This document shows positions 1 through 19,998 of a stretch of DNA of 64,000 bases, piece after piece; within the stretch, counting starts at the first letter, position 1; every line of letters starts with the position of its first letter. The translations under genes were made by a program, and so were the position numbers. The notes under the pieces are model-generated. The model made no database searches and had not been told where the DNA came from. It worked only from the letters and a program-made list of their open reading frames with translations. The stretch lies in the sequence record OP292654.1; one strand, 5' to 3'.

Positions 1-71
1 AGAACATGGGCGAAGACGCCAACGGTGAACTCGTTATCCTGGACTACGGTCTACAAGATTAAAAAAAGTCC

Positions 72-100
72 TTGACAGGGCTTAACGATTCCGGTACTAT
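72..100 (+). promoter_or_regulatory. sigma70-type promoter
   Basis: TTGACA-N17-TACTAT preceded by A-tract/AAAAGTCC. Confidence 0.8.
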
Positions 101-191
101 GTACCACATCGACGGATGTAAAGCGTGATTATGGTACACTTCATGTCGAAGGTACTTATCTTATGAATAAAGAAAAAGGGCATTACAAAAC

Positions 192-407
192 ATGGCTAAA
201 AACACTATTACTGATATTGGCGAAGTAGAACGCAACGTGAACTACATTCAGTTCCAGATTGCTCAGGCAGAAGCACTGCTGGCTCCTTTCGCTAACAGCG
301 ATAAGCCAAAGATCTGCTACGCACATCTGCTGGACTGGAAGAAATCGTTGCAGACTGAACTGCACGAAATCCGTAAGGCTCAGCAAAAGGCACGTTACCA
401 CAAGTAA
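192..407 (+). CDS. hypothetical protein
   Basis: ORF with RBS downstream of promoter. Confidence 0.7.
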   Translation: MAKNTITDIGEVERNVNYIQFQIAQAEALLAPFANSDKPKICYAHLLDWKKSLQTELHEIRKAQQKARYHK

Positions 408-474
408 TTGCCAGCCGTTATGCCGTTAACGATGTTAGCGGCATCTTTTAAGTAAGTAATAGGGAAGACGTATC

Positions 475-717
475 ATGAAAAGTGCTACAGAACTGAAAAA
501 CCTACACAAACGAATTGAACTCTTGAAAGGTCAATTGGCGATGGTTAGTACCGAAATCAAAGAACTTGACGCTAAAGAGAACAAAACGAAAGACGAAACA
601 AAGCATCTTGCTAAGTCTCGTCAGTTACAAACCAACCTAATCTATGATATTCGTGGTCGTCAATTGGACTTCAACGATTTGAAAGAAGTGGTTATTTCTG
701 AAATCATCAACTCTTAA
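475..717 (+). CDS. hypothetical coiled-coil protein
   Basis: ORF with GGGAAG RBS. Confidence 0.7.
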   Translation: MKSATELKNLHKRIELLKGQLAMVSTEIKELDAKENKTKDETKHLAKSRQLQTNLIYDIRGRQLDFNDLKEVVISEIINS

Positions 718-729
718 CTGGAGAGAAAA

Positions 730-1206
730 ATGGCTGCTATAGCATTGTATTGTTTGCTGGGAGCTTTAGTACTGTTCATCTTGTGGATGTTGATTGTAAC
801 ATCATCTATGGGTACTGAACGTCTTAAAACCGCTCAGTTCTTAATGTCATCTTTGACTTATAACGAAGAAGCAACTATCAAGTTGAACCTTCTGATGGAT
901 AAGTATGAAGCTGGCCTATTAACTGTTCGCCGTGAACCAAAAGAACTTATCTTTACCGATAAGGAAACTGGTCAACGTGCGGGTGTGATTTGGGTTGGTA
1001 ACAAGTACTACTCTTATGGCAATCTGTACCGTTACGGTGCTAATGATAGTAAAGATTGGGCTTGTAACAAATCTGACATTAAAACTTTCAAGCGTGTGAT
1101 CAAGCTTGAAAAATCTCTGGATAACACTTCTGGTAATCAGGTTTCTCCTGACGCACCAAAACAGGCTACTAAACGTAGCTCAGATGAAGAAGTGATTCTG
1201 GACTAA
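730..1206 (+). CDS. hypothetical membrane-anchored protein
   Basis: N-terminal hydrophobic helix; GGAG RBS; terminator follows. Confidence 0.7.
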   Translation: MAAIALYCLLGALVLFILWMLIVTSSMGTERLKTAQFLMSSLTYNEEATIKLNLLMDKYEAGLLTVRREPKELIFTDKETGQRAGVIWVGNKYYSYGNLYRYGANDSKDWACNKSDIKTFKRVIKLEKSLDNTSGNQVSPDAPKQATKRSSDEEVILD

Positions 1207-1242
1207 GGGCGGCAACGCCCTATTTTAAATGAGAGGTACATC

Positions 1243-1926
1243 ATGAGTATCATTGAACGAGCAAAGCGTAATGTTTCTGTAAGTGAATTTGAAAACAATG
1301 TTGAACCAATTGAGTTATCGAAAGTTGATGTAGTATGTCCTTTTGATGAACAATATATCCTGCGTATGTGTGTATGTGCTGATGGTGAAAATCTGGTACT
1401 TCCTGATAATCTCCGTTGGATGACTCCAGTACTAGTAGAAGCCATTAACCATCAGAAGAATGCGATGGACGGCGATAAACAGTACTGCTACATTACTGTA
1501 CGCCACGGTGTTGTTAAATCTGTAACTGATGACGAATGGCATGTTGACGGTTTCAGTACTAAGGTCGCTCACGTTCCTGAACAGAACTACATTTGGACTA
1601 ACCGTATTCCGACAGAATACACCAATGTTTCTGTGAAGTTCCCTGATGATTTTGATCCACTGAAACACAATGTAAACCACTTCCTGGAACAGAACATCAC
1701 TGGAGAAGTAAAAAGTTGTAAAGAGAATGTTGTGTACTGTATGGACCCGTACATTCTTCATCGTCGTCCAAAGGTTAGTACTGGAAAGGTTCGCACGTTT
1801 ATTCGTGTATCCTTTGTACCAATCATGATCAACGATGTAAACAACACACAAAATCCAAAGTTGTTACAACAGTACACTCAAGATGGTGTACAATTTAGGA
1901 ACAAATTAGAAACATATGGCAGCTAA
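1243..1926 (+). CDS. putative 2OG-Fe(II) dioxygenase-like protein
   Basis: WHVDG (HxD) ... LHRRP (distal His) ... RTFIRVSF pattern. Confidence 0.6.
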   Translation: MSIIERAKRNVSVSEFENNVEPIELSKVDVVCPFDEQYILRMCVCADGENLVLPDNLRWMTPVLVEAINHQKNAMDGDKQYCYITVRHGVVKSVTDDEWHVDGFSTKVAHVPEQNYIWTNRIPTEYTNVSVKFPDDFDPLKHNVNHFLEQNITGEVKSCKENVVYCMDPYILHRRPKVSTGKVRTFIRVSFVPIMINDVNNTQNPKLLQQYTQDGVQFRNKLETYGS

Positions 1927-2338
1927 GATTATCTGCGGGTTTCCTGGTATTGGTAAAAGTACTGTAGTACAGAACAATGATAAAGTAATTGACTTAGATA
2001 GTTCTGGCTACAGTAAGATACAAACATTTCCATTGAACTATATTCAGGCTATTATTGATGCTGAGAATGATGGATATGAATATATACTGATCAGTACTCA
2101 TGCATCAGTTAGAAACTTGCTTCAAACACTTGGTATGAAGTATACCAATGTGTATCCTGAAATTGATTTAGGTGAAGAATATATAGAACGTTATAGAGAA
2201 CGTGGTTCTCCAGAAAGTTTTATTAACTTCCTTGAAGAAAATTGGGATGATTTCATCTTCGAATTACAGTATGATGAATCAGATTATATCGAACTTGAAC
2301 CTGGTCAATTTCTTTCAGATGTTTTGAAAAATATTTGA
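1916..2338 (+). CDS. P-loop nucleotide kinase-like protein
   Basis: N-terminal IICGFPGIGKS Walker A followed by IDLDSS. Confidence 0.65.
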   Translation: MAAKIICGFPGIGKSTVVQNNDKVIDLDSSGYSKIQTFPLNYIQAIIDAENDGYEYILISTHASVRNLLQTLGMKYTNVYPEIDLGEEYIERYRERGSPESFINFLEENWDDFIFELQYDESDYIELEPGQFLSDVLKNI

Positions 2339-2347
2339 AAAAAAGAT

Positions 2348-2375
2348 GAAACGATTCAAAAGTTTCTGGTATAAT
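2348..2375 (+). promoter_or_regulatory. GAAACG-N16-TATAAT class promoter
   Basis: GAAACG at 2348, TATAAT at 2370; repeated motif. Confidence 0.7.
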
Positions 2376-2392
2376 ATAGTACATAAGGCAGC

Positions 2393-2514
2393 GGAATCTT
2401 ACAGCAAAAATTAAACCTTTTGATGAAAACAAAACGACGGGGTTCAATTCCCCACCCACGAACATCTGCCTTATTCAAATAGTGGGAGCTTGGTGCTGGA
2501 TAAAAAGAGATTCC
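2393..2514 (+). ncRNA. CAGCAA-family element with permuted tRNA-like module
   Basis: GGAATCT/AGATTCC terminal stem, ACAGCAA, T-arm GGGG-TTCAATT-CCCC, closed acceptor-like CCCAC/GTGGG. Confidence 0.7.
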
Positions 2515-2537
2515 TGAATTTAATTAAGAAAATTTTT

Positions 2538-2565
2538 GAAACGAATCAAAAATTTGTGGTATAAT
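2538..2565 (+). promoter_or_regulatory. GAAACG-N16-TATAAT class promoter
   Basis: GAAACG at 2538, TGTGG-TATAAT at 2560. Confidence 0.7.
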
Positions 2566-2582
2566 AAAAGTATTAGCAACAC

Positions 2583-2698
2583 GAAATCTTACAGCAAACA
2601 AAACAATATTTTTTATGCGAAAAAAACGGTGCGGTTCGAATCCGCAGCAGCCATGTTGCTATGTAGGCTGTGCTTGGGGCCAGAAAAACAAAGATTTC
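2583..2698 (+). ncRNA. CAGCAA-family element with anticodon loop GCG and permuted tRNA-like module
   Basis: GAAATCTT/AAGATTTC stem; TTTTT-AT GCG AA-AAAAA; T-arm TGCGG-TTCGAAT-CCGCA; GCAGCC/GGCTGT acceptor-like stem. Confidence 0.75.
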
Positions 2699-2723
2699 AG
2701 TTTCCTCAAACAAGGATAACAAA

Positions 2724-2882
2724 ATGGCATCAGCAGAAGAAAACATGGTAATTGTTCGTAAAATCCTTAGTGGAATTGACAACAATAACCTTCCTGAAGT
2801 AATGTCTGAATTAGGTTTTGAAGTGACAAAGAGTACAGAAAAAAGTACAGAATGGTCATTGAAAGAATCTGAACAAACATAA
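2724..2882 (+). CDS. small hypothetical protein
   Basis: AAGGA RBS before ATG 2724 (track ORF start overlaps the ncRNA). Confidence 0.55.
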   Translation: MASAEENMVIVRKILSGIDNNNLPEVMSELGFEVTKSTEKSTEWSLKESEQT

Positions 2883-2884
2883 TT

Positions 2885-2956
2885 GTTCCCATCGTCTATC
2901 GGTTAGGACGCCTCCCTTTCAAGGAGGAAAGCGGAGTTCGATTCTCCGTGGGAACG
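2885..2956 (+). tRNA. trnE: tRNA-Glu(TTC)
   Basis: full cloverleaf, CCTCC-CT TTC AA-GGAGG, TTCGATT T-loop; CCA not encoded. Confidence 0.95.
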
Positions 2957-2960
2957 CTAA

Positions 2961-3066
2961 AAGAATCGTCCAGCAAACATAACTCTTTATATTTCATTTG
3001 GCGAAAAACACCTTCGGTTCGAATCCGATTTACCACTGGCTGTGGGGATAGAAAACAACGATTCTT
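2961..3066 (+). ncRNA. CAGCAA-family element with anticodon loop TTG and T-arm
   Basis: AAGAATCGT/ACGATTCTT stem; TTTC-AT TTG GC-GAAA; TCGG-TTCGAAT-CCGA; CCAC/GTGG. Confidence 0.75.
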
Positions 3067-3094
3067 GTCTTTTAATTAAACCGAATTAGCACTC

Positions 3095-3250
3095 GGATTC
3101 TGACAGCAACACATAAAATCTTAAAATCTATCAAATAATGAGATTGGATACTCGGACGTAAAACTCCCTTCGTGTCCACCTGGTAACTAGGGAGATAATA
3201 ATTAGTTATATTGAGCCGTGCTAGGTAGTTGCTCAATTAATAGAGAATCC
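3095..3250 (+). ncRNA. CAGCAA-family element, long divergent cargo
   Basis: GGATTCT/AGAATCC stem followed by GACAGCAA; about 135-nt interior without a clear T-arm. Confidence 0.5.
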
Positions 3251-3291
3251 AGCGTACAAAGTACTTAAATCCTATTGGACAGTACTTTTTT

Positions 3292-3384
3292 GGAAGATTG
3301 GCAGAGCTTGGCTTATTGTACCTGACTTGAAATCAGGCGGGGGTTAATAGCCCTCCGTGGGTTCGAATCCCACATCTTCCTCCA
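3292..3384 (+). tRNA. trnS: tRNA-Ser(TGA)
   Basis: cloverleaf with long variable arm, CCTGA-CT TGA AA-TCAGG, encoded CCA. Confidence 0.95.
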
Positions 3385-3392
3385 AAATTTAT

Positions 3393-3514
3393 GAGAAAGT
3401 AGCTCAGTTGGTAGAGCAGGTAGAAACCCAAAATTACAGTACTGTAATTTCGCAGCAACCATACTTCATCCACTTTTAATGGCCTGGTCGTTGGTTCGAG
3501 TCCAACCTTTCTCG
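3393..3514 (+). tRNA. trnK: tRNA-Lys(TTT) interrupted by a 49-nt insertion (3421-3469)
   Basis: removing 3421-3469 gives a perfect cloverleaf: GAGAAAG/CTTTCTC, GGCCA-CT TTT AA-TGGCC, GTTGG-TTCGAGT-CCAAC. Confidence 0.85.
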
Positions 3515-3516
3515 CA

Positions 3517-3577
3517 TAGAATCTAACAGCAAACATATTCTTATTCAATTGGTGAAAACAAAGATTATAGATTCTAG
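3517..3577 (+). ncRNA. CAGCAA-family minimal element (loop AA TTG GT)
   Basis: TAGAATCTA/TAGATTCTA stem, ACAGCAA, TTC-AATTGGT-GAAAAC. Confidence 0.7.
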
Positions 3578-3630
3578 TTTTTAATTTAGTTTAAAAATAC
3601 TAAATAAAGTTGAAGCCATTCAACAAACAT

Positions 3631-3727
3631 GGTAAAGTGGCAGAGCTTGGCTTATCGCAGTCGCCTGGAAAGCGGCCAGGTTAGGTAATCCCTAGCCTCG
3701 GAGGTTCAAATCCTCTCTTTACCGCCA
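3631..3727 (+). tRNA. trnS: tRNA-Ser(GGA)
   Basis: cloverleaf, long variable arm, CT GGA AA loop, encoded CCA. Confidence 0.93.
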
Positions 3728-3746
3728 ATACACACAAGGAAGAAAA

Positions 3747-3962
3747 ATGTTTTACGATTATTACTACAAAGTAGATGGTGCTTTGCGTCGTCATACTAGT
3801 GCTGAAGAATTGAATGACGAACAAGTTAGCAATATCTTCGGAGCACAAAAATCAGTAGTTCTACTTGAGCCAGTAGTTTTTGAACGTGAAGTTCAAGACG
3901 AAGAAACCAAGAAGAAAAGTACTGTTAAAGAACACGTTGGCTATATCGGCTACGTAGAATAA
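3747..3962 (+). CDS. hypothetical protein
   Basis: AAGGA RBS. Confidence 0.65.
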   Translation: MFYDYYYKVDGALRRHTSAEELNDEQVSNIFGAQKSVVLLEPVVFEREVQDEETKKKSTVKEHVGYIGYVE

Positions 3963-3969
3963 AAGAATT

Positions 3970-4028
3970 TGGAATCCTCCAGCAACCACACAAAAACTCA
4001 AACTTTTACTTTGACTATGTGGATTCCA
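3970..4028 (+). ncRNA. CAGCAA-family minimal element with Lys(TTT)-type anticodon stem-loop
   Basis: TGGAATCC/GGATTCCA stem, CCAGCAA, TCAAA-CT TTT AC-TTTGA. Confidence 0.75.
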
Positions 4029-4045
4029 GTATTAATTGAGAGATA

Positions 4046-4276
4046 ATGATTATGGATAATCAACATAAACAAATTAAAGGGTATCGAGACTTGAATCAGC
4101 AAGAAATTAATGCGATGAACGCAATTAAGGACTTGGCTGCTAAAGTGGGCGATATGATCGACGCACTTGAAGATCATCCTGATATTGATAAACGTTGGCT
4201 GGCTATAGCTAAGACTGACCTACAGAAAGGTTTCATGTCGGCAGTACGGAGCGTAGCAAAACCGGATTCATTCTAA
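4046..4276 (+). CDS. acb2: anti-CBASS cyclic-nucleotide sponge Acb2 homologue
   Basis: MDNQHKQIKGYRDL..EI..MN.IK ... RWLAIAKTDLQKGFM...R..AKPDSF closely resembles my recollection of the Acb2/Vs.4 family N- and C-terminal motifs. Confidence 0.85.
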   Translation: MIMDNQHKQIKGYRDLNQQEINAMNAIKDLAAKVGDMIDALEDHPDIDKRWLAIAKTDLQKGFMSAVRSVAKPDSF

Positions 4277-4744
4277 ATGAGCAAATACGATGTGTTATAC
4301 GAAATTGGAGAAGAATATTTCATTTCGTTATTACATACGCCGGAACGATGTAGATCAACTATTGATGGATTATCTAATACCGTGAATTTTAATGTAAATG
4401 ATCATTATTCTTCACGAGACGGGGTAATCCATTTTTATTTGTCGGACGAAAAGGAAAACACCTTTTCAGTTGTTGTTGACTTGTTAGCTAACAGGTTCAG
4501 CGTACACTACTGGAGCGATGATGACGATATTGATACTGACATATTCAAGGTCAATAAACTCCCTTACAATATTAGTGAGGAATGGCATTTCCAGTTGAGT
4601 ACTAAAGCAGAATTTCCGTTCAGTTATGAATTCATAACACGGTTACGCGAGTTCGTTAAGTACTTCGAAGATATGATGAATGTTAATCATAGCATAGACG
4701 CACTTAGGGAACATCATAACATTGTACCATATCCTTGTAGGTGA
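4277..4744 (+). CDS. hypothetical protein, EE-x-FQ-x-[ST] paralog family
   Basis: SEEWHFQLST motif shared with 9865, 10248, 17279, 17797. Confidence 0.7.
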   Translation: MSKYDVLYEIGEEYFISLLHTPERCRSTIDGLSNTVNFNVNDHYSSRDGVIHFYLSDEKENTFSVVVDLLANRFSVHYWSDDDDIDTDIFKVNKLPYNISEEWHFQLSTKAEFPFSYEFITRLREFVKYFEDMMNVNHSIDALREHHNIVPYPCR

Positions 4745-4748
4745 TATT

Positions 4749-4985
4749 ATGGAAACCATCGTAGATGAAATCCTGAATAGTGCTAATATGCACGAAGCTG
4801 TTCGTAAGTTTGTAGACGCAAACGAACGTTCAAATAATATTGATTTGTACCAAGCACTGACTTATGTGTTCTTTGAAATGGATGAAAAAGATCCTCGCTT
4901 CGAAGAACTGAACGATGTACTTGACGCAATGAGTGGTCATTGTAACAAAGCATGTTACATCGGCACTGGTGATTATGCCTGGTAA
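4749..4985 (+). CDS. hypothetical protein
   Basis: AGGTG RBS before ATG 4749. Confidence 0.65.
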   Translation: METIVDEILNSANMHEAVRKFVDANERSNNIDLYQALTYVFFEMDEKDPRFEELNDVLDAMSGHCNKACYIGTGDYAW

Positions 4986-4997
4986 CAGGCATTAAAT

Positions 4998-5070
4998 GGG
5001 AATATAATTCAGTTGGTAGAATGCTCGACCGATAATCGAGTCGTCGCTGGTTCGAGTCCAGCTATTCCCA
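4998..5070 (+). tRNA. trnI: tRNA-Ile(GAT)
   Basis: cloverleaf GGGAATA/TATTCCC, CTCGA-CC GAT AA-TCGAG. Confidence 0.9.
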
Positions 5071-5154
5071 CTAAGTAGTACTGTGAAATTATCCAACACA
5101 ATAGGTAGCACTTTGGATGAATCAGTAAGCCTATATCGTACTACAAATAAATTA

Positions 5155-5290
5155 AAGAATTCAACAGCAACTAAATGTTAACCCAAATAGCGGCCTTATG
5201 GCGTGTAGGTTCGAGTCCTACGATCTATGTCAGTACGAATAGTGATGGTGAAATAGGTAGACACGGCTATCCAATAAACGATGAATTCTT
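5155..5290 (+). ncRNA. CAGCAA-family element with circularly permuted class II (Leu-like) tRNA body
   Basis: AAGAATTCA/TGAATTCTT stem; 3' half (ATAGC, variable hairpin GCC-TTAT-GGC, GTAGG-TTCGAGT-CCTAC) precedes 5' half (GGTGAAATAGGTAGACAC D-arm, GCTAT). Confidence 0.75.
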
Positions 5291-5308
5291 GTATTAATTT
5301 GGAAAAAT

Positions 5309-5569
5309 ATGGATATTTTATACGCTAAAGTAACTGAGCTTAATGCTGGTTACGAAGGTGATCGAATAAACGCAAAAGCGTTAGACCCGGATCATTACTA
5401 CGTTGTTAGTTATGTTGATATGGGAAGTTCTAGTACTTCAATATACTTAGAAAATGACCGTAAATCATATAACTCTGTAAATTTTACTTTCTACACTATT
5501 GTTGACGGTAAACATAAAGAGTACAACATATTCAGTGACCCGAATTATAATCCGTACCTTAACCTATAA
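5309..5569 (+). CDS. hypothetical protein
   Basis: ORF with GGA RBS. Confidence 0.65.
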   Translation: MDILYAKVTELNAGYEGDRINAKALDPDHYYVVSYVDMGSSSTSIYLENDRKSYNSVNFTFYTIVDGKHKEYNIFSDPNYNPYLNL

Positions 5570-5578
5570 AGGTGATAT

Positions 5579-5719
5579 ATGTCAGGCAACGCACATAGCT
5601 CTAAACGTAACGACCATAGTTATGAAACGCTGAATCGCAATAATCCGCATCATTCGCGTCGTAATGACCATAGTTACGAAACCCTGAATCGTAATAACCC
5701 GCATCAACCTAAACGTTAA
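5579..5719 (+). CDS. 46-aa micropeptide with duplicated RNDHSYETLNRNNPH motif
   Basis: AAAGGTG RBS; 54-bp-period direct repeat differing mainly at synonymous positions. Confidence 0.65.
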   Translation: MSGNAHSSKRNDHSYETLNRNNPHHSRRNDHSYETLNRNNPHQPKR

Positions 5720-5736
5720 TGCGTTAGTAACAAATT

Positions 5737-5851
5737 TGGAATTTAACAGCAATCACTTTCTATCACGCAGCATGTCGCAGGTTCGAGTCCTGTCAGTACT
5801 AGTACTGTAGCTCAGTTGGGAGAGCAGCCGCCTAAAACGAAATAAATTCCA
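5737..5851 (+). ncRNA. CAGCAA-family element with circularly permuted tRNA-Asp-like body (anticodon ATC)
   Basis: TGGAATTTA/TAAATTCCA stem; CT ATC AC-GCAGC-ATGTC-GCAGG-TTCGAGT-CCTGT-CAGTACT then AGTACTG-TA-GCTC AGTTGGGA GAGC-A-GCCGC. Confidence 0.8.
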
Positions 5852-5974
5852 GTCTTAATCAAATTCACCAGGCGTACTATGGTGTGATACGGATAGCATG
5901 TTATCCTATAAGGTCAGAATAGAATACGTATTAGTCTCTTGAAAAGACTTCTGTAAACTCAATTTGTACTCATT

Positions 5975-6029
5975 TAGAATCTACCAGCAATTAAAACTTC
6001 TCGGATATAGAAAACAAAAATAGATTCTA
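5975..6029 (+). ncRNA. CAGCAA-family minimal element (loop CG GAT AT)
   Basis: TAGAATCTA/TAGATTCTA stem, CCAGCAA, TTCT-CGGATAT-AGAA AAC. Confidence 0.7.
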
Positions 6030-6053
6030 GCTTTAATTGAATAAAACCGGATT

Positions 6054-6115
6054 TGGAATCCAGCAGCAACCATAAATGAACTCAACTGTTAATTGAAAAC
6101 TCAAAATGGATTCCA
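6054..6115 (+). ncRNA. CAGCAA-family minimal element with Asn(GTT)-type anticodon stem-loop
   Basis: TGGAATCCA/TGGATTCCA stem, GCAGCAA, TCAA-CT GTT AA-TTGA AAAC. Confidence 0.8.
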
Positions 6116-6132
6116 GTATTTTTAAGTGAAAT

Positions 6133-6633
6133 ATGAGCAGAAAACTTGAAATTGATAATCGTGTAGTTCAGGAAATGATTTCACGAGGAAGTACTATTCA
6201 GCAAATAGCTAATACATGTAACGTATCAGCAACAACGATGAAAAAGTATTTCAAAGATTTGAGTTTAAAAACTCACACAATGATTCAACGTGAATCTTCA
6301 ATATGTTTAAAACACAATATTGAATTTTCACAACGAACAGACGGCAAACGTGTATGTATGAAATGTAATTCTGAAGGAGTTACAGAACATCGTAAACGAT
6401 TAAAGATAAAAGCCGTTGAATATCTTGGTGGTAAATGTGAACGATGCGGATATGATAAATCAATAGCTGCGTTAGACTTCCATCATAAAGACCCAAGTCA
6501 GAAAGATTTTGGAATTTCAGATGAAGGTGTTACCCGTTCATGGGAAGTTATTCAAAGTGAATTAGACAAATGTATGTTAGTTTGTGCTAATTGTCATCGA
6601 GAAATTCATGAAGAACTTAATTTAGAAAATTAA
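6133..6633 (+). CDS. HNH homing endonuclease
   Basis: GGKCERCGY...ALDFHHKDP...CMLVCANCHREIH; N-terminal HTH-like segment. Confidence 0.85.
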   Translation: MSRKLEIDNRVVQEMISRGSTIQQIANTCNVSATTMKKYFKDLSLKTHTMIQRESSICLKHNIEFSQRTDGKRVCMKCNSEGVTEHRKRLKIKAVEYLGGKCERCGYDKSIAALDFHHKDPSQKDFGISDEGVTRSWEVIQSELDKCMLVCANCHREIHEELNLEN

Positions 6634-6643
6634 GAAAAAAGAT

Positions 6644-6671
6644 GAAACGCCACAAGAAATTGTGGTATAAT
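6644..6671 (+). promoter_or_regulatory. GAAACG-N16-TATAAT class promoter
   Basis: GAAACG 6644, TGTGG-TATAAT 6666, upstream of tRNA-Asn. Confidence 0.7.
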
Positions 6672-6690
6672 ATAAGTAAGAAAAACAAAA

Positions 6691-6762
6691 GGTTGTGTCG
6701 TATAAAGGTTATTACGGAGAGCTGTTAACTCTTTTATCTTGGTTCGATTCCAAGCATAACCG
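6691..6762 (+). tRNA. trnN: tRNA-Asn(GTT)
   Basis: cloverleaf, GAGAG-CT GTT AA-CTCTT. Confidence 0.92.
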
Positions 6763-6810
6763 CAAAGTGATGTTTGGGCGGTTTGATAATATATAAATCC
6801 AAACAGAACA

Positions 6811-6856
6811 AAGAATCTTCCAGCAATTAAAACGGTTGAATAATATATAGATTCTT
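6811..6856 (+). ncRNA. CAGCAA-family minimal element
   Basis: AAGAATCT/AGATTCTT stem, CCAGCAA; short interior with only a weak hairpin. Confidence 0.6.
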
Positions 6857-6860
6857 GATT

Positions 6861-6936
6861 AGGCTCATGGTGTAATTGGCTAACACACCGGATTTTGATT
6901 CCGGCATTCTAGGTTCGAGTCCTAGTGGGCCTGCCA
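6861..6936 (+). tRNA. trnQ: tRNA-Gln(TTG)
   Basis: cloverleaf, CCGGA-TT TTG AT-TCCGG, encoded CCA. Confidence 0.95.
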
Positions 6937-7081
6937 ATTTAAAGATTTCATCACTTCCTGTGTGAAACAAGCTGGTATTTCCCCCTGCTTGTAAAATTAT
7001 CGAAAGGGAACCGAGTAGCACCTGTACAGGTCAGTTCGTAAAGAACAAGTATGTACAGTACTGACAGCGGCAGTACAACCT

Positions 7082-7154
7082 GCGAGTATCATATAGAGGC
7101 TTAATATGCTGTCCTTCCAAGTCGGTCACATCGGTTCGAATCCGATTACTCGCT
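7082..7154 (+). tRNA. trnG: tRNA-Gly(TCC)
   Basis: GCGAGTA/TACTCGC acceptor, CT TCC AA loop, one anticodon-stem mismatch. Confidence 0.88.
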
Positions 7155-7281
7155 CAGATTAAGTAAACAAACAAACAAAAAGGTAAATCCTATGATGCTA
7201 TAGAAATTCAGTACTGGTCCACCGGATAAAGTTAATTCAGAACAAAACACTAAATTAATTACTATCCAAAAGGAACATACT

Positions 7282-7608
7282 ATGTTGACCAAAGAACAAT
7301 TCATTACTGTAACAACAACCTGGAAACTTGAAAAAGAGCATACTGTACACGAGCATATTATCTATAATATTCTTCGGGGTAAGTCGGCTGATGAAGGTTT
7401 CGTGCCATTGACTGATTGGGGTCGCCTACATGCGAGTCAAAACAATCCTTGGTTTAACTATGACAATGCGATTCTTGAATTGCGTTACCGCTTGAATGAA
7501 AAGCGTTATGGTTATGAAGGTACAGTAAAACATTATTCCGAAGTTTTCGGCATTGATTTTACACCGGACTTAGTTGCTGCTATCGTCGCAGAACTTAAGA
7601 CCAAATAA
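7282..7608 (+). CDS. hypothetical protein
   Basis: AAGGA RBS. Confidence 0.7.
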   Translation: MLTKEQFITVTTTWKLEKEHTVHEHIIYNILRGKSADEGFVPLTDWGRLHASQNNPWFNYDNAILELRYRLNEKRYGYEGTVKHYSEVFGIDFTPDLVAAIVAELKTK

Positions 7609-7614
7609 CAAATT

Positions 7615-7678
7615 TAGAATCTAACAGCAAACACTATTTTATTTCACTTATCTTGAAAACCGAAAATAATAGATTCTA
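7615..7678 (+). ncRNA. CAGCAA-family minimal element with anticodon-like loop TAT
   Basis: TAGAATCTA/TAGATTCTA stem, ACAGCAA, TTCA-CT TAT CT-TGAA AAC. Confidence 0.75.
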
Positions 7679-7693
7679 GTCTTTATTCTCAAA

Positions 7694-7960
7694 ATGAGGA
7701 AAACTGATATGGCACGTGAGTTTATGCACTTTGCTTACTTCAAAGAAGTAACCAAAATGGAGCAAGCAAAATCTGGTATTAAACCACTAGAAATAGAAGA
7801 TTTTGCGAACCAAATCGAAGAAATGGTTCAAAAGATGATCGATGCTGGTGAAGATGAAGGTATGTTTCGTATAACTTTACCTGATAACTTACCGCCAGAA
7901 AAAGCAGTTGAGTTCATTGACGAAGTTATGCGTCGTCTAAATGATCGTTTCGGTGGATAA
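7694..7960 (+). CDS. hypothetical protein
   Basis: ORF in co-directional run. Confidence 0.6.
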   Translation: MRKTDMAREFMHFAYFKEVTKMEQAKSGIKPLEIEDFANQIEEMVQKMIDAGEDEGMFRITLPDNLPPEKAVEFIDEVMRRLNDRFGG

Positions 7961-8450
7961 CATGACTTCCTCTGAAATTTCTCAGGCAAGAACTGCGTTC
8001 GATATTCTCGTTAGAGATAAAGAACGCATGATTGATTTAATCAATCGTGATAAGTTACAGATTAATAGCGGTGCTAAGTTTGTAATTGAACAGTACTTAA
8101 ATGGTACACTTGAAAGTTTAGATACTTCTTTGTACTCCAATTCGGTACTGATTGCTATTGATTTACTGAAAAAAGCATTGGAAGAAAGTAAGCCAATTTA
8201 TGGTGACTTTTATCCTGAATTACGTCAACGTTACTTTGAAATATTAAATTGTCAACCAATTGAGAATTCAAACAACGCACTTACTGATAGTCATTTAGCG
8301 TGGATGTTAACTGAACTATCTAAACCAACTATGTCGGAAACAAAGAAACATCGTTGGCTTGGATACATTCAGGGTGTAATGGCTACAAAGTCTCACATTG
8401 TTGTAAACGAAGAACGTGACGCTACCCGCGACGTGTTTAAGGGGAAATGA
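7941..8450 (+). CDS. hypothetical phage protein
   Basis: C-terminal HLAWML...KKHRWLGYIQG motif recalled from phage proteins. Confidence 0.7.
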   Translation: MIVSVDNMTSSEISQARTAFDILVRDKERMIDLINRDKLQINSGAKFVIEQYLNGTLESLDTSLYSNSVLIAIDLLKKALEESKPIYGDFYPELRQRYFEILNCQPIENSNNALTDSHLAWMLTELSKPTMSETKKHRWLGYIQGVMATKSHIVVNEERDATRDVFKGK

Positions 8451-11017: not shown

Positions 11018-11584
11018 GTGTTTATGAAACAATTTTCAAAGGATGAATTATTAGAAGCTGCTAAATCAGCAACGACCAAAAAAGAAGTATATCTTAATTT
11101 GGGAATTACAACTATGAATGGTCGTTATACTAAGATATTAAAAGAACAATTTGAACTACATAATGTAGATTTAGATATGATAATTTTCAATAATCTTAAT
11201 ATTGAAAAAACATGTCCAGTTTGTAATAGTACGTTTATTGTATCACGTTCAGTTGATTTAACTAAGCCAAAAACAACTTGTTCATATAGTTGTGCGAATA
11301 CATATTTTAGAACAGGAACTGATCATCCAAACTTTGATTCAGATTCTACTTATGCTTACAGATTTATATGTTTTGCTAATCATGAAAAGAAATGTGTAGT
11401 ATGCGATGAACAAAATATTGTAGCAGTACATCATTATGATGAAAACCATCACAATAATGAACCATCGAATTTGGTTCCTATGTGTCCAACCCATCATAGT
11501 TATATGCATAGTAGTTTTAAACATTTAATTGAAGAACAAGTACATCAATATGTTCTTAAATGGAAAACAGAAAATGAAACGTAA
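11018..11584 (+). CDS. HNH homing endonuclease
   Basis: CPVC..CSYSCAN zinc finger; KCVVCD...VHHYDENHHNNEPSNLVPMCPTHH. Confidence 0.85.
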   Translation: MFMKQFSKDELLEAAKSATTKKEVYLNLGITTMNGRYTKILKEQFELHNVDLDMIIFNNLNIEKTCPVCNSTFIVSRSVDLTKPKTTCSYSCANTYFRTGTDHPNFDSDSTYAYRFICFANHEKKCVVCDEQNIVAVHHYDENHHNNEPSNLVPMCPTHHSYMHSSFKHLIEEQVHQYVLKWKTENET

Positions 11585-13052: not shown

Positions 13053-13265
13053 ATGAAAAAGAACAAAGGTTTAGAACAATTCATAGAACAAGCAATGAAT
13101 GTTGATGACGATCTGGTTCAACGTGGTCAGATACATGGTGATTTTAATCCAGAAGAAGTTGCTAAAACATTAAACCTCAACGGTGACACTATTCACCTTG
13201 AAGGTACTGTTGATGAAAAAGCTGACCAACTTCTGGACATGTTCAAGAAGTTGGACGAAAAATAA
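13053..13265 (+). CDS. hypothetical acidic protein
   Basis: TAAGGT RBS. Confidence 0.65.
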   Translation: MKKNKGLEQFIEQAMNVDDDLVQRGQIHGDFNPEEVAKTLNLNGDTIHLEGTVDEKADQLLDMFKKLDEK

Positions 13266-13277
13266 AAACAGAACTTA

Positions 13278-13351
13278 ATAGTAGTAAGTCAATTGGTAAC
13301 GACTCCCTATTAAGATTAGGAGAATGTGTGGTTCAAATCCCTCCTACTATT
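13278..13351 (+). pseudogene. degenerate tRNA-like gene, anticodon AAG
   Basis: ATAGTAG/CTACTAT acceptor, AGTC/GACT D-arm, CCTA-TT AAG AT-TAGG; T-stem largely mispaired. Confidence 0.6.
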
Positions 13352-15553: not shown

Positions 15554-15634
15554 GAGTATATAGCTTAATTATAGAGCAGCGATTTTAACAGGTAATGCTG
15601 GTCGTCAGTGTAGGTGGAACCCCTATTATACTCA
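15554..15634 (+). pseudogene. tRNA-like element with expanded (17-nt) anticodon loop and altered T-loop
   Basis: GAGTATA/TATACTC acceptor, GCTT/GAGC D-arm, GCGAT/GTCGT stem, GTAGG-TGGAACC-CCTAT. Confidence 0.6.
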
Positions 15635-19274: not shown

Positions 19275-19294
19275 CAAAAAACTTGAAAATATTT

Positions 19295-19322
19295 GGAACG
19301 ACTCAAAATTTTCTGGTATAAT
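19295..19322 (+). promoter_or_regulatory. GGAACG-N16-TATAAT class promoter
   Basis: GGAACG 19295, TATAAT 19317. Confidence 0.65.
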
Positions 19323-19329
19323 GATTACA

Positions 19330-19450
19330 TAAGACGGTTACTTGAATCTTCGGATTGCGTCTCGTTCCCTTGAAAGAGGTTAGTCCAGTACTGTAAAACG
19401 TCAAGCCCCATCTTCGGATGGCTGAGGCTGATAGAAAATATCAGCCGACT
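19330..19450 (+). ncRNA. candidate structured small RNA
   Basis: ORF-free, own promoter; AATC-TTCG-GATT and CATC-TTCG-GATG UUCG hairpins, GGCTGATA/TATCAGCC hairpin. Confidence 0.5.
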
Positions 19451-19743: not shown

Positions 19744-19998
19744 CTAGAAGATTGAAAAGTACGACTTACGGCTGGCTGCTGCCAGGGGTCAACACGATTG
19801 ACCATCTTCACGAAATTACGTATCGTCTAACGTTTAATCTTGCGTATTGTCCAAAGAAGGGATATAATGGATTAGATAGGATTCTGGTTCGCCCACGAGG
19901 GGTTCTGGGGATACAGGTGAAAATCCTGTTGCGTATGCCAAAAATTTGTAGTACAATGAATGTAACAAAGAAACTCAATAAACCAAAGAGGTAACACC

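Follow-up and report, generated by a model that had tools for sequence, protein, structure and literature searches.

Handle-bearing RNA elements with tRNA-like heads in the tRNA island of Xanthomonas phage XbC2: a candidate family of phage Y-RNA-like RNAs

Elements of the XbC2 tRNA island

The stretch analysed here, which we call the window, makes up the final 64 kb of the genome of Xanthomonas phage XbC2 (OP292654.1), a Mimasvirus jumbo phage with a genome of 367.9 kb; all coordinates are window positions unless marked as record positions. Between positions 2393 and 7679, in an island of tRNA genes, lie 12 structured-RNA elements (E01–E12), all of them on the + strand. They are annotated neither in the GenBank record of XbC2 nor in those of five relatives. 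Window positions 2300–7700 are 100% identical to XbC2, and the nearest relative is Erwinia phage Kaldavass (93%), followed by Cronobacter phage GAP32, Pectobacterium phage CBB, Serratia phage BF and Yersinia phage fHe-Yen9-04 (Yen9-04).

The elements are built from a common part, the handle, and a variable part, the head. In the handle the paired 5′ and 3′ ends form a helix, P1, followed by 1–3 unpaired nucleotides (nt), the motif CAGCA(A/T), the variable head and an A-rich return strand. This creates an asymmetric internal loop above P1 that presents CAGCA(A/T) on its 5′ strand and an A-rich, often AAAC-bearing sequence on its 3′ strand. The members found in XbC2, together with a tRNA gene that contains the same handle, are the following.

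E01, 2393..2514, + strand: long element with handle, T arm, long-loop hairpin and D-like stem; syntenic in five related phages
E02, 2583..2698, + strand: long element with handle, A/U hairpin with loop ATGCGAA (2615–2621), 4-nt variable region, T arm, closed acceptor-like hairpin and D-like stem
E03, 2961..3066, + strand: long element with handle, hairpin with loop ATTTGGC (2996–3002), T arm and short hairpin
E04, 3095..3250, + strand: 156-nt member with handle and a head of unassigned type without T arm
tRNA-Lys(UUU) with handle insert, 3393..3514, + strand: Rfam tRNA with 46.1 bits, annotated as tRNA-Lys in GenBank
E05, 3517..3576, + strand: minimal element, hairpin TTCA/ATTGG/TGAA with a 5-nt loop; 63.5 bits with model R1 (see below)
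E06, 3969..4029, + strand: minimal element, hairpin 3998–4014 with loop CTTTTAC
E07, 5155..5290, + strand: long YrlA-like element in the style of a type II tRNA, with variable arm, T arm, acceptor-like region and long D arm
E08, 5736..5852, + strand: long YrlA-like element with anticodon-stem analogue, T arm, closed acceptor hairpin and D arm; core 5770–5828
E09, 5974..6030, + strand: minimal element, hairpin 5998–6012 with loop CGGATAT, without U33
E10, 6053..6116, + strand: minimal element, hairpin 6082–6096 with loop CTGTTAA
E11, 6811..6856, + strand: 46-nt member without a clear head hairpin
E12, 7614..7679, + strand: minimal element with a second helix inside P1, followed by hairpin 7643–7657 with loop CTTATCT

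Four types of head can be distinguished. A hairpin alone is carried by E05, E06, E09, E10 and E12, with E11 lacking even this hairpin. A closed tRNA body without anticodon hairpin is found in E07 and E08; its parts are an analogue of the anticodon stem, the T arm, an acceptor-like hairpin that ends in a short loop, and the D arm, with a variable arm added in E07. E01–E03 combine a hairpin with a T arm and further stems, and the 156-nt head of E04 stands by itself. The copies are syntenic across genera, and the head type of E05 recurs in BF, Yen9-04 and Aeromonas phage LAh_8. Stems are preserved through sequence change: the arms of the E04 orthologues covary, with four different arm pairs, and the E09 stem changes on both sides (TTCT/AGAA versus TCAT/ATGA) among both paralogues and orthologues.

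In addition, inspection by eye indicates that the leader of E01 (2381–2390) can pair with 2466–2473, the loop of its own acceptor-like hairpin, the seventh pair being G–C in XbC2 and Kaldavass and A–T in CBB, BF and Yen9-04. The leader of E02 (2576–2583) can pair in the same manner with 2654–2661, again the loop of its own acceptor-like hairpin. These pairings suggest a pseudoknot or an alternative fold.

Handle, heads and their relation to tRNA

In six related jumbo phages we counted 67 elements, 9–13 per genome and 43–157 nt in length. P1 comprises 7–10 base pairs (bp) in 67/67 copies, giving each of them the paired terminal stem of a Y RNA. The motif reads CAGCAA in 64/67 copies and CAGCAT in 3/67, and is separated from P1 by 1 nt in 48 copies, by 2 nt in 18 and by 3 nt in one. 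The sequence of P1 itself is variable, with 32 distinct helices among the 67 copies and two to five types of pair at six helix positions. Alignments of orthologues from the same site contain compensatory changes, which in the case of E07 affect four P1 pairs and one pair of the variable arm.

CAGCAA is enriched in the window (72 matches versus 29.5 ± 5 in shuffles). A strict pattern of the element is matched 10 times on the + strand of window positions 1–8000, compared with 8 matches per 720,000 strand-nt of control sequence from the same genome (0.11 per 10 kb), and the armed pattern is confined to one 5.3 kb stretch of the 368-kb genome. We also built a covariance model, R1, from 16 minimal jumbo-phage copies, with E11, E03 and E08 outside the training set. 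When the whole genome is searched, R1 returns only members of the island at E < 0.1, including the untrained E11 (34.7 bits, E = 7.5e-4), E03 (31.1 bits, E = 0.004) and E08. In a collection scan, matches to the family came from the same clade of jumbo phages and from one 174-kb contig; all other matches were due to chance. A well-formed minimal element is present at L022:11871-11920, on an IMG/VR contig of 173,827 bp, half the size of a jumbo phage.

The closed-body elements resemble YrlA RNAs. The core of E08 matches Rfam YrlA (RF02553) at 41.9 bits (E = 2e-8) over model positions 24–84, and the YrlA matches of E08 and its orthologues range from 36.2 to 41.9 bits in four jumbo phages. The tRNA-like module of YrlA (T arm, closed acceptor hairpin and D arm) is present in E08 as judged by the model and in E07 as judged by structure, and is absent from the minimal members. 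A five-helix structure of E08 over seven orthologues has 94.3% of its cells paired, with five pairs changed on both sides; 0/500 shuffles are as good, and sliding the partners cuts pairing to 17–42%. At the gathering threshold the Rfam scan returns tRNAs only, and a permissive scan of the elements yields the partial YrlA match and neither a ribozyme nor a riboswitch nor any further family. A self-cleaving ribozyme, considered on account of the conserved loop strands, was dropped for want of Rfam support. Neither ARAGORN nor Rfam calls a tRNA in the free-standing elements, which have no cloverleaf with a free acceptor end, and the view in a preliminary description of this DNA that these RNAs cannot be aminoacylated is borne out.

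The handle also occurs within true tRNAs. The 122-nt tRNA-Lys(UUU) gene contains a 49-nt insert (3421–3469) consisting of a hairpin flanked by an AAAC-bearing strand on one side and by CAGCAA (3453–3458) on the other. This insert is the free-standing handle in circularly permuted form. Insert-bearing tRNA-Lys genes are also found in Kaldavass, GAP32 and CBB, with inserts of 49–51 nt. ARAGORN calls an intron at the insert, and its placement between nucleotides 28 and 29 (28/29) is the only one that gives each of the four phages an anticodon stem with 5/5 Watson–Crick pairs; exon joins were judged by this base-pair count, ARAGORN being too permissive on trial joins to discriminate between them. 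Inspection by eye revealed no convincing bulge–helix–bulge motif around the insert. With the handle placed at 28/29, the hairpin of a minimal member thus stands where a tRNA has its true anticodon arm. The four head types are a handle-bearing tRNA minus its body, minus its anticodon arm or minus neither.

Four further oversize tRNAs of 110–119 nt were noted, one at record positions 299897–300011 of XbC2 (L009:45897-46011) and three at L004:864-973, 6215-6328 and 13153-13271. Between their D arm and anticodon arm, three of the four contain an inserted hairpin with a motif of CAGCA or CGGCA type behind it. No such motif is seen in L004:864-973, and the anticodon arms of these tRNAs are irregular. 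Weak Rfam tRNAs that ARAGORN does not call lie at 13278–13351 (33.6 bits) and 15554–15634 (40.8 bits) and may be degenerate or unusual tRNAs.

The preliminary description had drawn attention to hairpins with anticodon-like 7-nt loops. All six that it quoted are present, namely the hairpins of E06, E10, E12 and E09 and the loops of E02 and E03 at the positions given above, and C32–U33 does occur in three of these loops. We evaluated the loops of 28 minimal members from eight phage lineages against 2000 shuffles, none of which reaches any of the following four counts.

7-nt loop on a stem of 4 bp or more: 21 observed, shuffle mean 7.2
Loop identical to a real tRNA anticodon loop of XbC2 (Asn, Lys, Met): 3 observed, shuffle mean 0.03
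Loop with at most one mismatch from a real tRNA loop: 9 observed, shuffle mean 0.49
Loop of the form pyrimidine-U-NNN-purine: 7 observed, shuffle mean 0.64

Anticodon-likeness is significant across the family and recurs in distant phages, where we find Lys (CTTTTAA) and Met (CTCATAA) loops in Aeromonas phage, a Ser-like loop (CTGCTAA) in mycobacteriophage and an Asn-like loop (CCGTTAA) in Ralstonia phage. Within XbC2, however, only two loops rise above chance: that of E10, which is the exact anticodon loop of the XbC2 tRNA-Asn (null probability 0.003), and that of E06, which is one mismatch away from the tRNA-Lys loop (null probability 0.05). The loops of E09, E02, E12 and E03 are two to three mismatches from any tRNA loop, as expected by chance.

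Conservation of the loops is uneven, and the refuting outcome that the preliminary description named, loop length and U33 not being kept across homologues in related phages, is seen in part. The Asn loop is invariant in five phages, whereas several other heads vary in relatives. The Lys-type loop is altered in CBB (CCTAACC) and the E12 head in the 93%-identical Kaldavass, the 'Gln'-type head of the E03 orthologues has a 5-nt loop in BF and Yen9-04, and the 'Ile'-type heads have loops of 7–9 nt and no U33. Syntenic sites may hold different heads. This lability and heterogeneity weaken the idea of a simple 'panel of anticodons'. A separate observation concerns the phage tRNA-Ile(GAT) at 4998–5071, whose anticodon loop (CCGATAA) has C33 instead of U33.

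A Ro60-like protein and its RNA neighbours

XbC2_180 (record positions 104031–105545) is a protein with the Pfam domains DUF2828 and DUF7788, and not TROVE; its neighbour XbC2_178 is an RNA ligase. PDB searches by sequence alone, with the DUF2828 protein as well as with its alignment, found nothing. An AlphaFold model was then used for fold comparison. It was calculated for a stand-in that is 99% identical to XbC2_180, from a 38-sequence alignment, and has a predicted local distance difference test score (pLDDT) of 89.8. The top eight PDB matches of this model are all Ro60, Rsr or TROVE proteins (E values of 3e-10 to 1e-5, TM scores of 0.45–0.60). The matches are full-length, extending over ∼550 columns, and the fourth-best is the Ro60 protein of a Thermus phage (PDB entry 9KOP). 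To judge from these matches, the protein has the layout of Ro60 and Rsr, in which helical repeats form a ring ahead of a vWA domain. Using tblastn, we found the DUF2828 family in about 700 phage records, and homologues in mycobacteriophages are annotated as 'Ro-like RNA binding protein'.

Nine DUF2828 loci from unrelated phages were examined, each with 2.5–3 kb of flanking sequence on either side. Handle RNAs are found within 2.5–3 kb of the DUF2828 gene and on the gene strand in 7/9 of these phages.

Aeromonas phage LAh_8: seven tandem minimal elements just upstream of the gene, with loops that include CTTTTAA and CTCATAA
Mycobacterium phage Krypton555: three elements downstream; the middle one is an Rfam YrlA match (38.3 bits), and the third has the loop CTGCTAA
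Listeria phage A511: three elements directly upstream
Escherichia phage wV8: four elements, in a tRNA cluster behind the gene
Ralstonia phage RSP15: one long and one minimal element, the latter with the loop CCGTTAA
Enterococcus phage EFGrKN: two Rfam-YrlA-like RNAs (45.9 and 35.7 bits), one of them within a CAGCAA handle, plus another element
Citrobacter phage Ci1: two promoter-driven oversize tRNAs with a hairpin-plus-CAGCA insert at 28/29

The P1 sequences are unrelated between these lineages, yet they are always paired. In eight of the loci (A511 excluded) the strict pattern has 12 matches on the gene strand, where ∼0.6 would be expected, and 0 on the other strand. R1 recovers six copies from LAh_8, one from EFGrKN and, at 39.5 bits (E = 1e-5), an element of A511; its nine matches with E ≤ 1 all share the strand of the gene.

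Some further observations were made at these and similar loci. About 20 records of Enterococcus Schiekvirus contain a module of T arm, acceptor hairpin and D arm like that of E08; it is unannotated and lies directly upstream of the DUF2828 gene in the two records that were checked. In LAh_8 the DUF2828 gene has an annotated start (L041:2381) that overlaps two handle RNAs, and gp048 of wV8 (L038:4829-5086, − strand) is a small open reading frame (ORF) antisense over a long handle RNA; both are likely to be annotation errors.

Two elements of XbC2 are preceded by promoters of their own.

Sigma-70-type promoter, 2346..2375, + strand: upstream of E01, with 10/12 hexamer matches and TG before the −10 hexamer
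Promoter, 2536..2565, + strand: upstream of E02, with 11/12 matches and TG before the −10 hexamer

An extended −10 promoter of this type also precedes tRNA-Asn (6642–6671). Extended −10 promoters at ∼19290–19450 and 19750–19950 stand before stretches without tRNA or ORF and may mark further small RNA genes.

Directly after E06, a + strand ORF of 76 residues (4046–4276) contains the Pfam Acb2/Tad1 hairpin domain (E = 1e-20). To judge from this domain it is likely to be a sponge for cyclic-nucleotide immune signals (anti-CBASS or anti-Thoeris), and its position next to E06 would mean that the tRNA island also holds anti-defence genes. The XbC2 genome codes for Rnl1, Pnkp, a second RNA ligase, a CCA-adding enzyme, Thg1 and RlaP. 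These genes and the Acb2/Tad1-like ORF fit a tRNA conflict. Just before E08 a + strand ORF of 46 residues (5579–5719) contains two near-identical repeats of ∼20 residues, and HNH endonuclease ORFs are situated among the tRNA genes at 6133–6633 (also with a helix–turn–helix match) and at 11018–11584 (recognized by eye only).

Interpretation and comparison with known systems

Y RNAs and Ro60 have been described in organisms ranging from bacteria to animals. We consider it rather probable, at roughly 0.6, that the elements are genes for small, stable Y-RNA-like non-coding RNAs in which a handle for a Ro-like protein is joined to heads derived from tRNA. The XbC2 elements would be expressed as RNAs with the predicted ends, bound by the protein and biologically active. 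The handle is a putative docking site for the Ro60-like XbC2_180. The heads would derive from tRNA in several ways: as the anticodon arm alone, as the elbow body with a closed acceptor stem, as both (E02, E03), or as the whole tRNA. Such heads could let the RNA–protein particles pass as tRNA to anticodon nucleases or to repair or modification enzymes, and the particle might then block tRNA-reading proteins or, alternatively, deliver the Ro-like protein with its partners to such proteins. A narrower version of this mechanism, which we offer only tentatively and hold to be unlikely in its entirety, is that phages with a DUF2828-type Ro60-like protein run a modular RNA–protein counter-defence with one handle and interchangeable tRNA heads, the specificity of which is written in the anticodon loops. 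The heads would be swapped fast because each matches a tRNA-targeting nuclease of the host or a tRNA-reading enzyme, and the particle would act with the neighbouring RNA ligase to block that enzyme or to mend its damage.

Several results weigh against the interpretation as Ro-bound Y-RNA-like genes. Ten of the 12 elements have no recognizable promoter of their own, and the Ro-like gene of XbC2 is ∼200 kb away from the RNA island. No element lies within 2.5 kb of the DUF2828 gene in Vibrio phage D486 or Aeromonas phage AsFcp_1. Taken alone the head hairpins are weak, with interiors of 0 to −1.6 kcal/mol. The YrlA matches remain below the gathering threshold of 69 bits and span the tRNA-like module only. 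Finally, the published Rsr-contact motif, GNCGAAN0-1G (PMC4201824) or CGAA (PMC12135203), is absent from the handle, which is alike in architecture and has CAGCAA as its conserved motif; GGCGAA is present once, in the E03 hairpin, outside the handle. Because of the score below threshold and the lack of this motif, we did not file the elements as members of YrlA. They are best read as a previously undescribed Y-RNA-like family.

The preliminary description had proposed that the RNAs alone serve as decoys that soak up anticodon nucleases or tRNA-modifying enzymes, in other words as an RNA-only anti-defence panel. This is doubtful as an explanation in its own right and is compatible with the favoured reading as a downstream role of the particle. 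It draws on the family-level anticodon-likeness with its exact Asn, Lys and Met loops, on the presence of Rnl1 and Pnkp, the T4-type answer to PrrC, and on the Acb2/Tad1-like ORF that adjoins E06. The displayed identities (Lys, Asn, Met, Ser, Arg-like and Pro-like) overlap with the known tRNA targets of anticodon nucleases. However, many anticodon nucleases require modified bases or a whole tRNA. Nor do close relatives, or syntenic sites, keep the same heads; several heads are not anticodon-like, having a 5-nt or 8–9-nt loop or no U33, and the stems consist of four or five A/U-rich pairs of near-zero stability. A decoy function would also leave both the invariant handle and its linkage to the Ro-like gene unexplained. 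The same idea has been raised for YrlA, as the speculation that its tRNA-like domain is a competitive inhibitor (PMC7790460). It is less likely still that the handle is an intron-like segment, cut from pre-tRNA-Lys by phage enzymes (a nuclease, Pnkp and RNA ligases) with rejoining of the ends, and that the free copies are permuted pre-tRNAs or relics. The insert does have the unique 28/29 position, from which its removal restores a perfect 73-nt tRNA-Lys in four phages, and it coincides with the ARAGORN intron call; ligases and Pnkp are encoded, and in E02, E07 and E08 the 3′ half comes before the 5′ half, as in permuted tRNA genes. Yet orthologues of the E08 group differ in the would-be anticodon, loops of 4–6 nt shut the acceptor stem, no splicing endonuclease was seen, and excision from a minimal member would leave only ∼15 nt. 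Minimal members are kept across genera and are clustered with the Ro-like gene.

Two other explanations do not assign the elements an RNA role of their own. They could punctuate long tRNA/ORF transcripts as terminators or RNase processing sites, in line with their location between genes and tRNAs on the transcribed strand and with the T/A-rich stretch that follows 46/67 copies. We regard this as very improbable: no terminator-like site on the + strand, with a G+C-rich hairpin and a T run, coincides with any element, P1 is AT-rich and encloses loops of 27–140 nt, and the invariant internal motif, the tRNA-like heads and the promoters of E01 and E02 would all be unexpected. Least credible of all are repeats that act at the level of DNA, such as miniature inverted repeats or recombination or homing sites near HNH genes. 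The inverted terminal arms, the many copies in one island and the two HNH endonuclease ORFs described above would suit such repeats, but the arms differ between copies and lineages while remaining complementary, the copies are syntenic across genera and share a single strand, and the element flanks lack the target-site duplication of a miniature inverted repeat.

The elements define a widespread, unannotated RNA family with a simple signature and tie handle RNAs to the DUF2828 branch of Ro-like proteins. The variable part of these RNAs appears to be cut from tRNA, in several cases as an exact copy of an anticodon loop, and the question of what bacterial and phage Y RNAs recognize thereby becomes concrete and testable. 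If the proposed mechanism is correct, the arms race over tRNA cleavage would involve Ro–Y particles. The family would also account for odd 'oversize' or 'pseudo' tRNAs and for several spurious small ORFs in many phage annotations.

Among known systems, the tRNA repair of phage T4 relies on Pnkp and Rnl1, which repair tRNA against the anticodon nuclease PrrC. It is similar in that the conflict is over anticodon loops, above all that of tRNA-Lys, and in that XbC2 encodes both enzymes; it differs in consisting of enzymes only, and we know of no RNA mimic in T4-type tRNA repair. Red algae and archaea have circularly permuted, intron-bearing tRNA genes, in which the 3′ half likewise comes first, the termini are paired and a non-canonical insert is present in the anticodon stem. 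In contrast to these genes, the elements have no bulge–helix–bulge on inspection and no conserved anticodon, their acceptor is closed, and they belong to a bacterial virus. As a reading of E07 and E08, permuted tRNA genes were considered and dropped in view of the closed acceptor stem and the unconserved would-be anticodon.

The remaining comparisons are with Y-type RNAs and their proteins. Yrn1 of Deinococcus radiodurans can be drawn with a T arm and a 5-bp 'anticodon arm' (PMC4201824), but its loop has 6 nt, no match to real anticodon loops is reported for it, and it is a single RNA. In a Listeria phage related to A511, highly abundant unannotated RNAs are found <2 kb upstream of an Rsr-like gene, the protein product of which is detected in virions (PMC12282133). 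The phiRo60 protein of Thermus phage phiLo binds the phage Y-like RNAs Yrl1 and Yrl2 as well as host PNPase (PMC12135203). This system shares with XbC2 a phage Ro60 homologue and phage Y-like RNAs with a stem beside a motif-bearing bulge. It differs in its CGAA motif, in having two RNAs and in that tRNA-derived heads are unreported, and its binding is experimental whereas that in XbC2 is one we infer.

The closest likeness in anatomy is to YrlA and YrlB, the RNAs bound by Rsr or Ro60 (PMC4201824). They too have a terminal stem followed by a large internal loop with a conserved motif on its 5′ strand, and the module order of T arm, closed acceptor hairpin and D arm is that of E07 and E08. The short members without a tRNA-like module stand beside the long ones as YrlB does beside YrlA, and in most of the phages sampled the RNAs adjoin a gene of the Ro60 type, those of XbC2 lying far from it. 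The differences are that the family has CAGCA(A/T) where YrlA and YrlB have GNCGAAN0-1G, that its presumed partner belongs to the DUF2828 branch of the Ro fold, and that each genome has 9–13 copies, many of which carry heads that mimic an anticodon arm.

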